Shown: positions 28,549-54,060, counted from the first letter of the stretch. The stretch is 64,000 nucleotides of DNA from Stylophora pistillata (GCF_002571385.2 NW_019218012.1:127682-191681), one strand, 5' to 3'. A program made the numbers and translations. The notes: generated by a model not told the origin, from the sequence alone.

Positions 28549-29460
28549 ATGGGGGAAATGGATGAGCTACCACTGCAAGAAATGAGTCAACTTTGGAAAA
28601 ACGAAGAGTACAGGCGGTACCTTACGATTTTCGAGAAATGGCTTCACGAAAGCGATTGGTCTGCATATCGTTCCCTAAGGGATGAAGACAAGCAAACTAT
28701 TCGAGACCAATCATGTAAAGCTTTGAGTCGTTTAACATACCTTTGGAAGTCTCACAATCAGGAAATTCATTGTCTGATACAATCTATTTATTACTCATCT
28801 GTAAAAGTCAAATCATTCACCATCCGGGAATTGCAAGTAATTGCATACAACGAGTATTTGAGACGTATTCTTTGTAGAGAAGTCATGAGGTTTGTCGATA
28901 TCAGCATTCCACAATTCATAGAGGCCTCTGAATTCCTGCTAGAAGAAACATTCTTAGAACAGCAAACATTGAAAGTGGAGCAGAACTTGAGGCAGTGTAA
29001 CAACAGACCGTCAGATGGTGATGACTACATTTGTGCTTTACAAAGGATCTCCGTTGAGTTCATGGAAACGCTGTACATATATCCATTGACTGATGATTAT
29101 GCGTATCCTGAACGTGCCGGTGTCTACTTTATATATTATATTGGTAAAACTGCGCTATATGACGGAGAAGTCAAGCCTTCCATAGCCAGGCCGATTTACG
29201 TAGGAAAGTCGAAAAAGAATATCTCAGAGCGCCTTAAGGACCACCGCGAAATGATAGAACGTGCTGTAGACTTAGAGGTGGACGATTTCATTGTTCGACT
29301 CATGTTAGTGGACATTAAATTCTACGCTGGCTGTATTGAGGAAATGCTTATAAATTACTTCATGCCTAAGTGGAACAAGGAGAGGGCATGGCTCTCTTTT
29401 GGGAACGCTAGAAGCGAAACAAACAGTTGGAACAGGTATCATATTCAAAACATAAGATAA
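28549..29460 (+). CDS. Eco29kI/Cfr42I-family GIY-YIG endonuclease-like protein, copy 1 (303 aa; unknown helical N-terminal domain)
   Basis: Intact single-exon ORF. Motifs AGVYFIYYIG...LY...PIYVGKS...ISERLKDH...LEVDDFIVRL...IEEMLINYFMPKWN...SFGN...SWNRYH occur in the same order as in R.Eco29kI (GVYALYYTG, PIYVGKA, RIREH, DFSCRF, VEAALIKIYKPLWN, GFGN, WDVIH; recalled from memory). Confidence 0.88.
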   Translation: MGEMDELPLQEMSQLWKNEEYRRYLTIFEKWLHESDWSAYRSLRDEDKQTIRDQSCKALSRLTYLWKSHNQEIHCLIQSIYYSSVKVKSFTIRELQVIAYNEYLRRILCREVMRFVDISIPQFIEASEFLLEETFLEQQTLKVEQNLRQCNNRPSDGDDYICALQRISVEFMETLYIYPLTDDYAYPERAGVYFIYYIGKTALYDGEVKPSIARPIYVGKSKKNISERLKDHREMIERAVDLEVDDFIVRLMLVDIKFYAGCIEEMLINYFMPKWNKERAWLSFGNARSETNSWNRYHIQNIR

Positions 29461-30800
29461 CATTCTGAGCTTGGCCCACCACTTTGCGGATACGACCACC
29501 CAGAATGACTGGTCATCAAATATCAGTAACATACATGGAGAACATGCATACCGATGTTGAAGTGTAAAGGGGTAATTGGATTGATGAAATTTCTGAAACC
29601 TCACAAAACTTTAATGAATATGTCTATAAATAATCTTTCCAGTTTCATTTTCATTGTAGTATTACTGGAACTTGAATTTGAACGCCCATCTTTAGCAGTG
29701 AATTTCACTGGTCTCTCTGTCAACTGATTCAGTTTTTTCTTTTTGCATACTTTTTTTGTTAACATCGGTACCCATATCCTCTATTCTCTTCTCTCTCTCT
29801 AGTAGTATTACCGCATGGAGAAATTATCGATGCTGAGGACAAAATTTCCCTCACAGAAACATCACTTCACGACTAGATTTTACTTGGGCAAGAAATTAAA
29901 TACACCTGGGGGAGGGGGGGGGAGGGACATACACTGCTATTTCATCTTAACTTGGTAATTTAAGTTTTACTTAAACAGTATAGGCTCCATTTCTTTCAAA
30001 AAAAATATTGTTTAATCTTGGGATTGACCTAAGGTTTTATCGACTTTTAACACCTTGGTTTTCTTTGCCAACACTAAATAAACCCAAGTTTTTAAATGTT
30101 GCCACGTGTTTATAATTTTAATTTGAGGCTGTTTTCATTTGTAAATAAGTTTCCCAATTAACAATACCTGAGAAAAATTACCATAACTCTGTACCTAGTA
30201 AAAGTGGGCTACTATGCAAGATCTTACTACGCTTACTATGCGAGATCTTAACATTAATTTCTTTGCAATAACTGTATATTGCAAGAAGCAATAGTTAGAT
30301 GAATAACCCTATGTAAGTAAATATAGTTTGCAAATCTCAACAAATACTTCGTCTGTTAAACAAGGTACACTTCTTTGAAAAAGCTGTCACATTTTTGTGG
30401 TTTTACAGAGGTTGCTTCAATTTTCTGGAAACTGTAACATTTTTGAGTCCGAAAACTCTCGGGGAGGTCTTTTGGTGACGTGTGACGTTTAGTTTTACAG
30501 ACTCGATTCGTGGAAGTGAAGTATACTGAAAGCAAACGAAACTCCAGAAAGAGCAAAGAAAAATCCACGCAAATGAAGTAACGATGCGAACGAATATCTT
30601 TTTCGTGAAATAAAGTTCACAAACGGAAGAATTTTGGACTCCACAACAAAACTGTTCCTGGATTTCTTGTTTTCCTTTATTCACTCTGATTGGTCAATAG
30701 GATTGGCCTCACCCTCTTTAGTAATCAGAAGCAGATCGTAAAATCAATCGTTCTCCCGCCTCAGGGGTGATTTGCTTGTTTAACTTCAGAGTTAGCTCTA

Positions 30801-51400: not shown

Positions 51401-53058
51401 AGTCATTAACGGTCTACTGGGAGTCGCTGAAGACAAACGTCAGGTAAGACACAAATCTCATTGCTACTATCCTATGCTTTCGATGAACTAAAATAGCAGA
51501 AAAGTTTACAAAAAGAATATAGGTTTGCATTTAACACTTGTGACTCCATAAACAAGGGCTCACTCAGATGTCATGGTGAAATAAAATGCTGCGTTAGAAC
51601 TCGAACTTATATGAATATCCAAAAGCGACACTACTTGAGCGGTATATGGCGATATTGCGGTAGTGGGCAGCTTTTCTCGCGGTATTTCGGTAGTTGTTGT
51701 AGCATTTGGGCGGTACCAAAGATTATCCTTCAAGTCCTCCATTGTTTCACTCTAAACAATTTCTAGTTTCTGACAGTTTTGGAAACAGGTTGAAATCGAA
51801 AATAGCATGACTGAGACTTGGTTTATACTAGTAGCAATTGTTTCGGACTCGTGAATAATACGGTATGTTTCAGAACCGGATTCGATCATTTTGCCGTTTA
51901 CACTTAAGTAGACAAATCCGAAATAAGATCTCTCCTCTTTGGTCGTGTCTTCGGAGATTTTAATTCCCAAATTTATAGCTGGAACTGTGAATCCGAAAAC
52001 TTTTTATTGCGGAAAGCTTATTCGTGTAAACAATTTGTGAACTTTCATTTACAAATTCTAAATCGTTATTTCTATGTTAGTAGTTGTAAAAAGTAGTGGT
52101 ATGACACGAGTTTCGACTCGCTATTGAAGCATTGCGGTACCGATATTTAACGATTTTTTTGCGATATTGGAGAATTTGCCGATTCTTTTTTTTTTTTTTT
52201 ACTGTATTGAGGTTTTCATAATCCAAAATATCCTCCTCGGATTCTTGTCTATCTAATTACCCAAAACCGAAAATACTATTCGCTTTAATTTTGACCCAAA
52301 TAGTTCCACGAAATTAAGAAAAATAAAATTACGTAAAGCATCAGAAACAGAAGCAAATAGTAAAGGCTTTGTTCAATCAAGGTTCTGAGGCGTCTTTCTT
52401 AGCTAACTTTGTGTTGTGATAGAGACTGTCTTTCCGACATAATGATTTTTTAAGCATATGCTAATTTGGGTGTTGATTGAAATACTAATCGAATGCAAAA
52501 TTACGTGGCAACCTGAAGAAAGTTTGTCATCAAAACATTAACCCGTTTCAATATGGTTTCCCGCGCAAACGTTGTACACGCCAGTATCTGCATATTTTCT
52601 ATTAGAATTAATCGCGAGTAGAAATAATATTCATGAACAAGTCTTATGACATTTTGCAATGTCAATGGCTACGCTTCTCGCCCTCTATTTTTTCAGTGAA
52701 CCACGAGCTCGTGATTTATATCGCCTAATACTGAGTTGGGTGGGACGAAGGGCTCTGCATGACGGAAACCAGAGAGCGTCTAAATCGCACAAACATTATT
52801 AGTCTAGGTAAGGAACATGGGGCTTACAAGTCTAACCGGCGGAAAACACATTATTACGGCAACAATCGAGCTACCAGACAGGCTATTTCTTGGGCTGACT
52901 TTTTGATTTTGTTTTTACTGACTTCATGATGACTTCTTTGGTAGGTAGTGTTACACCTGGAAAAACAAGGTTTATCGCAATCTTCCGGCTCAGCGAAATC
53001 AGGTAGGGTTATAGCCTACAAAGTTTTAGGAAGTTCACGAGGATTAAGGAAGAAAATT

Positions 53059-54060
53059 ATGGAGGAACTGCCGGAAGACCTACGGCAACTTTGGGATAAA
53101 CAACGGTATCATAAATTCCTTGAGAGAATTTTTGTCATTTCGAATGGTATAGCTTCAGAAGTCTCAACTGAACATGAGAAGGCGGCTTTTAAGGCAGCTC
53201 TGCCATTGGTACCAGAACTTTGGAAATCTAAAGAATCCCAAGAACATGAACGCATACAAGAAATTTATTTCTTGTGGGAAAAGGCTGCGCTACCCGAGTC
53301 GCTAGCAATTTCGCTAGCAATTTCGGCCAACCAGTATGTGAAAAATGTTCTTTGCACAGAATCCATGGAGAGAGTTGATTTTTGCCGCATTCATAAATGT
53401 TTATCGCTATCAAGCCTCTTACTTATTAAGCTTAAAATGGAAGTGGAGCAAAAAATTAATGTCGAAGATGCTATTGTTCAAGAAAGGAATAGTACTGGGG
53501 AAATTCCTTCGAAAGACGAAAAACAGAGCTCTGTTTTGCAAAAGATTTCCCTGAAACGCCTGGAAAACTTGTATATTTTTCCATTTGTCGAAATTGGTGA
53601 TAAACCTTGCCAGTATCCTGATCATCCTGGTGTCTACTGCATATATTATATAGGCAAATCTGACCTATATGAAGGCGGGGTCAAACCCTCTAAAGACCGA
53701 CCAGTTTACGTCGGAATGTCGAAAATAAGTATCTCAAAACGCCTGTTGAGCCACCAAAGCAAAATAGTCAAGGCAAGGGACTTGAACCGGAGAGACTTCA
53801 TCGTTCGATTCATGCTGGTGGACATGCATTACTATGCTTGCTGTGTAGAGGAGATGCTGATAGAGTACTTTAGTCCCGTGTGGAACGAGAACGAGGCCGT
53901 AAAGTTCTCTTTCGGTAACGCTGACGACGTGAACAACAACTGGCACAAATACCATGTTGAAGGGGACTCAAAAACTAAAGAAACTATGATAAAAAGTGTG
54001 AAGGATTATGAATTAAAACTGAAAATGAAACACCTCAGTCTGGCCACAACATCTTCGTAA
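53059..54060 (+). CDS. Eco29kI-family GIY-YIG endonuclease-like protein, copy 3 (333 aa from ATG 53059)
   Basis: Intact single-exon ORF. The start context GAAAATTATGG is shared with copy 1. Motifs PGVYCIYYIG, PVYVGMS, RLLSH, DFIVRF, VEEMLIEYFSPVWN, SFGN, NWHKYH. Confidence 0.88.
   Translation: MEELPEDLRQLWDKQRYHKFLERIFVISNGIASEVSTEHEKAAFKAALPLVPELWKSKESQEHERIQEIYFLWEKAALPESLAISLAISANQYVKNVLCTESMERVDFCRIHKCLSLSSLLLIKLKMEVEQKINVEDAIVQERNSTGEIPSKDEKQSSVLQKISLKRLENLYIFPFVEIGDKPCQYPDHPGVYCIYYIGKSDLYEGGVKPSKDRPVYVGMSKISISKRLLSHQSKIVKARDLNRRDFIVRFMLVDMHYYACCVEEMLIEYFSPVWNENEAVKFSFGNADDVNNNWHKYHVEGDSKTKETMIKSVKDYELKLKMKHLSLATTSS

Follow-up and report, generated by a model that had tools for sequence, protein, structure and literature searches.

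Restriction endonucleases are a textbook means of prokaryotic defence, and we know of no demonstration that one functions in an animal. What, then, do genes of this type represent in a stony coral? We address this question for a stretch of 64,000 nucleotides (nt) from Stylophora pistillata (GCF_002571385.2, NW_019218012.1:127682-191681), subsequently designated the window, in which positions are counted from the first letter. An original prediction, made from the sequence of the window alone, had noted three co-oriented open reading frames (ORFs), here c1, c2 and c3, which carry the motifs of the bacterial enzymes R.Eco29kI and R.Cfr42I, and had taken them for a horizontally acquired nuclease that was domesticated and expanded. 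R.Eco29kI and R.Cfr42I are Type IIP restriction endonucleases of the GIY-YIG class, which cut CCGC^GG (PDB 3MX1, 3MX4 and 3NIC). The observation of the ORFs is confirmed, far beyond chance. Overall, they are best explained as an anciently transferred and domesticated family of Eco29kI-type endonucleases with a likely role in defence or genetic conflict, an explanation to which we assign a probability of roughly 55%. What is new is a eukaryotic, two-domain and methylase-less branch of a known restriction enzyme family.

The nuclease domain and its active site

As originally predicted, all three ORFs are located on the plus strand. The coding sequence of c1 (28549-29460) starts with ATG and specifies 303 amino acids (aa), c2 is an open frame (38881-39759) without a start codon of its own, and the conserved ORF of c3 (53059-54060) encodes 333 aa from a MEELP start, its open frame extending back to position 52948. 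Pairwise identities of the three proteins are 42-54%, with a densely conserved C-terminal half and a looser N-terminal half. A six-frame search of the coral's own assembly (398 Mb, 5513 contigs) detected five matches genome-wide, all of them on the plus strand of the 482-kb scaffold C229 and within 51 kb, i.e. at positions 156230 (c1), 166556 (c2), 180740 (c3), 193969 (c4) and 207071 (c5). The latter two copies, encoding 326 and 328 aa, respectively, lie just outside the window. Thus, the three co-oriented ORFs are all present, but the genome has five copies, and the array consists of four intact copies and one truncated copy, c2.

The nuclease domain of c1 comprises residues 148-303 (28990-29457). 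Its assignment to Eco29kI rather than to the GIY-YIG domains of Penelope elements, SLX1 or ANKLE1 held up at the level of profiles and structure. The best Pfam match was RE_Eco29kI (PF09517), with 51.9 bits for c1, 56.6 bits for c2 and 47.7 bits for c3 (E-values from 1e-13 to 2e-12; gathering threshold 30.8 bits), and relatives bear the same label in precomputed annotation. The general GIY-YIG model of Pfam stayed below its cut-off for these three proteins. A phmmer search against the PDB retrieved R.Eco29kI and one non-significant row, matches in PADLOC were confined to models of Type II restriction endonucleases, and the protein atlas returned only bacterial Eco29kI and GIY-YIG clusters. A search of NCBIfam yielded nothing but a match of c4 to the excinuclease Cho, far below threshold. 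In an AlphaFold2 model based on an alignment of 100 sequences, c1 folds into two domains (predicted local distance difference test, pLDDT, 93.8; predicted template modelling score 0.90). Residues 148-302 of this model superimposed on R.Eco29kI (3mx4_A) in VIA-align with Z 13.0 and a root-mean-square deviation of 3.3 Å over 142 residues at 28% identity, while the GIY-YIG domain of UvrC followed as the next structural match with Z 6.9. The best ten rows of a Foldseek search were all Eco29kI (E from 5e-6), and the structural check suggested with the prediction therefore places the nuclease domain of c1 with R.Eco29kI.

Residues Y49, Y76, R104, H108, E142 and N154 of Eco29kI have been shown to be important by mutagenesis (PMC1952068). 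According to the phmmer alignment and a domain alignment of 250 sequences, their equivalents in c1 are Y193, Y217, R228, H232, E264 and N276, with codons at 29125, 29197, 29230, 29242, 29338 and 29374, respectively. The motif series GVYxIYY, PxYVG, RLxxH, DFxVR, ExxLI..PxWN and FGN is present in the alignment, which also bears out the claim that c1, c2 and c3 possess equivalents of all six residues. The hexad YYRHEN is intact in all five genomic copies, i.e. also in c4 and c5, and in 40 of the 49 coral-type sequences. As judged from the model, the C-terminal domain keeps the full one-metal GIY-YIG site (Tyr-Tyr-Arg-His-Glu-Asn) together with the Eco29kI fold.

The surroundings of the active site differ from those in the bacterial enzymes. 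The segment between the equivalents of Y76 and R104 measures 11 aa in the coral clade as compared to a bacterial median of 24, the segment from N154 to the following W measures 18 aa as compared to 23, and the bacterial C-terminal segment GFGNxxPGKGR...W D..HPGR is replaced by SFGNAxxxxNxWxKYH. In the domain alignment, neither the PGKGR loop nor the HPGR tail was found in the coral clade. The missing loops probably are DNA-contact elements. Since the coral enzymes lack the long Y76-R104 linker as well as PGKGR and HPGR, they are unlikely to have retained an unchanged CCGCGG specificity. A cut of both strands in the manner of restriction enzymes requires a homodimer; prediction of a c1 homodimer returned a score of 0.01, an output which according to the tool provides no evidence either way.

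A further variation of the domain was seen in another coral, in which the protein P0012 (contig L011, 10001-11206) carries a long acidic low-complexity insertion with repeated EEQSDEE between the equivalents of H108 and E142.

The N-terminal helical domain

Residues 1-147 of c1 (28549-28989) are modelled as an all-alpha array of nine helices, which packs rigidly on the nuclease domain; modelled in isolation, the domain reached a pLDDT of 88. It has no match in Pfam, Foldseek returned nothing at E ≤ 0.001 when queried with the isolated model, and VIA-align retrieved only generic HEAT/TOG/ARM-like or designed helical repeats with Z ≤ 10, which is within the noise among helical proteins. The domain was not detected by profile search in the bacterial relatives, including long ones, and in a profile comparison with one of the long ones only the nuclease part aligned. 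Residues H74, Y81 and Y103 are nearly invariant. Judging from the models, the domain is helical-repeat-like without a more specific assignment and appears to be lineage-specific to the coral-type proteins.

Transcripts, gene structure and genomic context

The expression check proposed with the original prediction had a clear outcome for c1. A contig of 3307 nt (L006), assembled from poly(A) RNA-seq data that bear the run label 'coral metagenome', encodes a protein that is 98% identical to c1 and maps to three blocks of the window at 99-100%, both junctions being of the GT...AG type. The non-coding exon 1 (15266-15698, plus strand; 98.8%) ends at a GT donor and contains a relic of a c4-like gene. 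Exon 2 (16409-16651, plus strand; 100%), which belongs to the 5' untranslated region (UTR), follows an AG acceptor, ends at a GTGAGT donor and shares 88.7% identity with its homologue, the 5' exon situated between c4 and c5 (67592-67848 in extended coordinates). Following an intron of ~11.7 kb, the last exon (28410-31043, plus strand; 99.6% over 2641 nt, TTTCAG acceptor) carries the complete coding sequence, which is preceded by 139 nt of 5'UTR and followed by ~1.6 kb of 3'UTR. The acceptor and the 5'UTR sequence ~140 nt upstream of the ATG are common to c1 and c5, and in a transcript of a related species (L009) a homologous 5' exon is joined to the coding exon. The c1 exon is found in five runs recorded as poly(A) RNA, which stem from three studies, and in many more runs whose type is unrecorded or guessed. 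Hence, c1 is transcribed, and its spliced poly(A) transcript has lost two GT-AG introns from the 5'UTR.

The main exon of c3 (52945-54060, plus strand) is annotated as gene LOC111333793. The corresponding NCBI model XP_022795150.1 is titled 'uncharacterized protein LOC111333793 [Stylophora pistillata]' and bears the label 'GIY-YIG domain-containing protein' in UniProt. It adds an upstream coding exon of 22 codons (51381-51446, plus strand): in tblastn, the N-terminus of the model aligns at 100% identity at these positions, and the alignment resumes at 52945. The c3 ORF equals residues 60-392 of the model at 100% identity. The absence of coding introns noted originally therefore applies to the conserved ORFs, but 5'UTR introns exist and the NCBI model of c3 includes an additional short coding exon.

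Are these truly animal genes? Bacterial contamination or an assembly chimera might be suspected, because the domain otherwise occurs in bacteria, because there are gaps in the assembly and because the junction at c2 is unverified. We regard this explanation as extremely improbable. The genes are spliced at GT-AG introns in poly(A) RNA, they have a G+C content of ~0.39 that matches their flanks, their products carry an N-terminal domain not found in bacterial relatives, and they reside on the 482-kb scaffold among split animal genes and long interspersed nuclear elements (LINEs). The split neighbours, predicted to be SLC30A1 and POGLUT1, were recovered in the window as a gene for an SLC30-type zinc transporter with Cation_efflux and ZT_dimer domains (two exons, 5260-7525, minus strand) and as POGLUT-like exons with a Glyco_transf_90 domain (8939-12329, plus strand). 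The latter provide a synteny anchor: in tblastx they are colinear with a 345-kb contig of another coral (L011), which encodes the POGLUT-like exons at 91-93% protein identity, followed by two RE_Eco29kI genes. Single RE_Eco29kI genes or tandem pairs are likewise present on further, independent contigs of other corals, which are 100 kb to 4.2 Mb long. Contamination is thus excluded for c1 and c3 to c5, leaving only the placement of c2.

A side observation concerns the neighbourhood of the genes in other corals. In Tara Pacific coral scaffolds from three samples (L012-L014, ~12650-13476), a tandem pair of RE_Eco29kI genes is immediately followed by an ORF with a PAX domain.

Selection on the two domains

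Pairwise Nei-Gojobori estimates of the dN/dS ratio (ω) were 0.3-0.5 for the nuclease domain and, among c1, c5 and the orthologues from related species, 1.4-1.9 for the N-terminal domain. A codon model (GY+F3X4) was fitted to five sequences, i.e. c1, two orthologues, c5 and c3. For the nuclease domain it returned ω = 0.58 and rejected ω = 1 (twice the log-likelihood difference, 2ΔlnL, 13.7; p ~2e-4), so that the dN/dS check called for by the prediction gave a value significantly below 1 and indicates that the catalytic half is maintained by selection. For the N-terminal domain ω was 1.43, and ω = 1 was not rejected (2ΔlnL 3.6; p ~0.06). The rate at which the helical half evolves is neutral or higher, although this half remains open and foldable. 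Synonymous divergence among the intact copies ranges from 0.4 to more than 1. Between corals, the copies are 28-57% identical, as compared to 91-93% for the adjacent POGLUT exon.

Distribution and origin of the family

Word-indexed protein searches gave only three to four coral-type relatives (coral-type proteins above 300 bits, bacterial proteins at most 84 bits), and a profile search that exhaustively covered 1.84 billion representative proteins was needed. Among its 719 matches, ~57 clusters extend over the two domains or parts thereof; the remaining proteins consist of ~200 aa and correspond to the nuclease part only. The named members derive from Stylophora pistillata and Desmophyllum pertusum (robust clade) and from Montipora foliosa (complex clade). 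Many further members stem from coral metagenomes of Tara Pacific and from holobiont assemblies based on long reads. One deep-branching member is located on a contig of 4.2 Mb, next to a gene whose closest counterparts are proteins of Oculina patagonica. No non-scleractinian name occurs among the named members, and most members carry no taxonomic label. Database labels of the coral genes read 'uncharacterized' or 'GIY-YIG domain-containing protein' only. Full-text literature searches revealed no description of an Eco29kI-type enzyme in any eukaryote; what they did reveal is a 'GIY-YIG domain-containing protein' in one Montipora expression list and a 'GIY-YIG superfamily member' in one Nematostella list, neither of them identified.

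In a quick tree of the nuclease domain (LG+G4, 141 rows), coral-type and bacterial sequences were split with a Shimodaira-Hasegawa-like approximate likelihood ratio (SH-aLRT) support of 99, and a careful tree (LG+C20+F+G4, 89 rows) reproduced this split with an ultrafast bootstrap of 100 and an SH-aLRT of 99. The stem of the coral clade measures ~1 substitution per site. The full bootstrap support of the split agrees with the proposed single origin, separate from the bacterial enzymes, and subsequent expansion. As far as the tree shows, a single acquisition would have preceded the split of robust and complex scleractinians. Greater bacterial diversity and the restriction-modification (R-M) context suggest that the transfer proceeded from bacteria to corals, the tree itself being unrooted.

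The bacterial sequence nearest to the coral clade in the quick tree, P0082 (placement SH-aLRT 79), belongs to a cassette composed of Vsr, C5-methylase and restriction endonuclease genes, which is the one bacterial locus inspected. In the coral genome, the C5-methyltransferase family PF00145 has matches on contig C2 only and none on C229, with N4 and N6 methylase families not included in the search. The idea of an animal 'restriction system' was not substantiated, given that the scaffold has no C5-methyltransferase match, whereas Vsr and methylase adjoin the endonuclease in the inspected bacterial relative. The simplest history would be one transfer of an R-M endonuclease gene, without its methylase, into a scleractinian ancestor.

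Among the short relatives, a bacterial-type RE_Eco29kI gene of ~200 aa (P0058; L024 3447-4058, and L025) overlaps adjacent ORFs and lies next to a protein kinase gene. There is no Pfam methylase match in the 8 kb shown, and hence a classical R-M cassette is not the setting of every short relative.

The truncated copy c2 and the history of the array

The c2 block (38877-41466, plus strand) duplicates c5, in a form truncated at the 5' end, together with the 3' flank of that gene. Its identity to the c5 region amounts to 98.8% over 2590 nt, ending at an assembly gap on the c5 side. The first ~36 codons of c2 are absent, and the block starts at the exact end (38877) of a 3'-truncated LINE reverse transcriptase fragment, which abuts c2 (37979-38877, plus strand; RVT_1, 101 bits) and is 95.6% identical to positions 34829-35728 of a LINE located further upstream. 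No listed contig from four public runs (two RNA, two other) spans the LINE/c2 junction at 38877, and the ratios of contig depth across 36500-42400 are ambiguous in four runs. RNA from the c2/c5 ORF is represented only by contigs of 151-203 nt at a depth of 2-5. c2 may be a pseudogene or truncated duplicate, or else a misplaced haplotype of c5 or an assembly artefact.

Positions 13976-29454 of the window are colinear with the unit formed by c4 and c5, the coding exons aligning at 73% (units compared: 192177-195529 of C229 versus 13976-16783 of the window). A c4-like promoter and the first ~44 codons persist at 15291-15678 as a stop-closed relic, of which 15523-15648 matches residues 3-44 of c4 in tblastn (55% identity, E 6e-8), and a homologue of the 5' exon intervening between c4 and c5 is present at 16531-16783. 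Accordingly, the array grew by duplication of a two-gene unit, one partner of which was later deleted. The duplicated unit comprises a c4-like gene, a 5' exon, an intron of ~11.7 kb and a coding exon of the c1/c5 type. Of the c4-like partner in the first unit, only the promoter and the first ~44 codons have escaped deletion, a remnant that now forms exon 1 of the c1 mRNA.

Two further sequences were noticed in the flanks of the copies. Positions 40440-41230, within the 3' flank common to c2 and c5, represent a very high-copy repeat, with a summed contig depth of 20,000-98,000 in large unlabelled runs, whereas the flanks reach ~100. The repeat also has coverage in poly(A) RNA, shows many internal skip variants of ~200 nt and probably is an element of the type of short interspersed nuclear elements or miniature inverted-repeat transposable elements. 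Approximately 3.3 kb downstream of c3, positions 57352-57747 resemble the 3'UTR of c1 (30419-30799) at 70% identity over ~400 nt, which may reflect a shared repeat or a remnant of a duplicated unit.

Possible function and alternative explanations

We propose that the gene of a bacterial Type II GIY-YIG endonuclease of the Eco29kI/Cfr42I type entered a coral ancestor once. The coral lineage would then have added 5'UTR introns and a new helical repeat domain of ~150 residues, and would have lost the linkage to a methyltransferase as well as several loops conserved in bacteria. The retained active site and fold, purifying selection and transcription suggest that the product is most likely an active Mg2+-dependent DNA endonuclease. 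As the bacterial recognition loops are gone, target choice or licensing would probably have passed to the helical domain. Tandem turnover, fast divergence relative to the neighbour gene and the occasional occurrence of catalytically dead paralogues are more easily reconciled with a genetic conflict, be it defence against the foreign DNA of viruses, bacteria or transposons or a conflict of another kind, than with housekeeping. In a more specific scenario, which we consider possible but rather doubtful, the protein would be an innate immune effector, whose rapidly diversifying helical domain recognizes determinants of viruses, bacteria or transposons, or else a lack of the host's CpG methylation, and thereby permits cleavage of foreign DNA by the GIY-YIG domain, amounting to 'restriction' without a dedicated methyltransferase. 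Of the originally proposed acquisition, domestication and expansion, the Eco29kI origin, the residence in the coral genome, the expansion and the constraint stand, but one copy is truncated and an R-M system was not recovered.

Several points weigh against a domesticated defence nuclease. A catalytic residue has been lost in 9 of the 49 family members, and c2, one of the three copies noted at first, may not be a functional gene. The excess of ω over 1 in the N-terminal domain is not significant with five sequences and may equally reflect simple relaxed constraint. Expression is documented by contigs from coral-holobiont poly(A) libraries, which are full-length and spliced for c1 but short and of low depth for c2/c5. 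Most of the metagenome-derived members are taxonomically unlabelled, so that the range of the family could exceed Scleractinia and the timing of the transfer could differ. Finally, it is solely the evolutionary pattern that points to defence or conflict.

Nevertheless, rival explanations fit the combination of features less well. The proteins could serve in housekeeping or repair as structure- or damage-specific nucleases, as do SLX1, ANKLE1 or the GIY-YIG protein MSH1 of plants, with the helical domain acting as a scaffold-binding module. The GIY-YIG fold indeed serves repair in UvrC, Cho and SLX1, with which the coral proteins share the catalytic superfamily and the one-metal mechanism; the sequence-recognition loops have been lost, c4 weakly resembles Cho below threshold, and expression occurs in ordinary adult-tissue poly(A) RNA. 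Repair genes such as those for SLX1, ANKLE1, UvrC and Cho are, however, conserved, normally single-copy and slowly evolving, whereas the coral genes form tandem arrays with turnover, diverge to 28-57% identity between corals next to a neighbour at 91-93%, have an N-terminal ω of ~1.4 and include several catalytically dead members, and the named members are all scleractinian. SLX1 or ANKLE1 identity was also rejected directly, because UvrC reached Z 6.9 versus 13.0 for Eco29kI and because the coral proteins have no RING/PHD, LEM/ankyrin or UvrC C-terminal domain. We therefore regard a repair function as unlikely.

An even lower probability is given to two further alternatives. A selfish locus, such as a homing endonuclease-like or toxin-type element or the cargo of a transposon, would be in line with the behaviour of bacterial R-M ancestors as selfish addiction modules, with the frequent occurrence of GIY-YIG domains in homing endonucleases and Penelope elements, and with the fast evolution and the LINE fragments between copies, one of which abuts c2. 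But there are only five copies in 398 Mb, all at one locus, their similarity is limited to the gene units without terminal repeats or shared flanks of transposable elements, and the array occupies the same place beside the POGLUT-like gene in another coral. The intact copies lack a fused reverse transcriptase or transposase, and the adjacent LINE has an APE endonuclease of its own. Penelope-like elements also bring a GIY-YIG nuclease into animal genomes, including those of corals, but their endonucleases are fused to reverse transcriptase, multi-copy and dispersed. This identity was discarded, as c1, c3, c4 and c5 possess no reverse transcriptase domain, the best profile is RE_Eco29kI and the reverse transcriptase beside c2 stems from an APE-type LINE. 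It is about as improbable that the genes are a decaying relic, i.e. a transcribed but functionless leftover of an old transfer with residual conservation. The truncation of c2, the sixth copy reduced to a relic exon, the catalytic substitutions in 9 of 49 members and an N-terminal ω indistinguishable from 1 would suit this explanation, while it is difficult to reconcile with the persistence of four ORFs, intact over 303-333 aa although their synonymous divergence is 0.4 to more than 1, a nuclease ω significantly below 1, intact members in both robust and complex corals, and an N-terminal domain that folds confidently around nearly invariant core residues.

An anciently acquired and domesticated nuclease thus remains the preferred explanation. 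The coral proteins share with R.Eco29kI and R.Cfr42I the Pfam family, the fold, the motifs and the six active-site residues in the same order, but their genes are eukaryotic with 5'UTR introns, encode the extra helical domain of ~150 aa, have no C5-methyltransferase match on their scaffold where Vsr and methylase adjoin the inspected bacterial relative, and specify a linker of 11 instead of 24 aa (median) and neither PGKGR nor HPGR. In other words, a restriction enzyme gene in stony corals appears to have been fitted with introns and a new domain and multiplied in tandem, while its catalytic site was kept under selection. Cnidarians possess immune effectors of prokaryotic derivation, including cGAS/STING-type, viperin, gasdermin and TIR modules; we know of no Eco29kI-type restriction endonuclease among those described. 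The coral family resembles them as a gene from a bacterial conflict system that expanded and evolves rapidly in an early-branching animal lineage, with the difference that its immune function is deduced only. Should the coral nuclease cut foreign DNA, the growing list of bacterial immune modules that cnidarians have reused would gain a nuclease arm, and the question would arise what protects self DNA in the absence of a cognate methylase. Whatever its role, the family represents a clean and datable gene transfer from bacterium to animal, whose product has a biochemical activity amenable to testing and may offer a novel specificity of practical use.

Further features of the window

A degenerate LINE is located between c1 and c2 (32762-36150, plus strand). 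It consists of an APE endonuclease part (32762-33556; Exo_endo_phos_2) and a reverse transcriptase part (34818-36150; RVT_1), between which lies an assembly gap, i.e. a run of N (33557-34445), that interrupts no nuclease ORF. An apparent ORF of 599 aa spanning this gap was dismissed as an artefact, since it is made of X's. Downstream of c2, an ORF of 413 aa on the minus strand (42021-43262; sequence context LRPISLTPVLSKV) has no Pfam match and coincides with a local G+C peak of 0.46; it resembles the region upstream of the reverse transcriptase domain in another retroelement of the kind lacking long terminal repeats.

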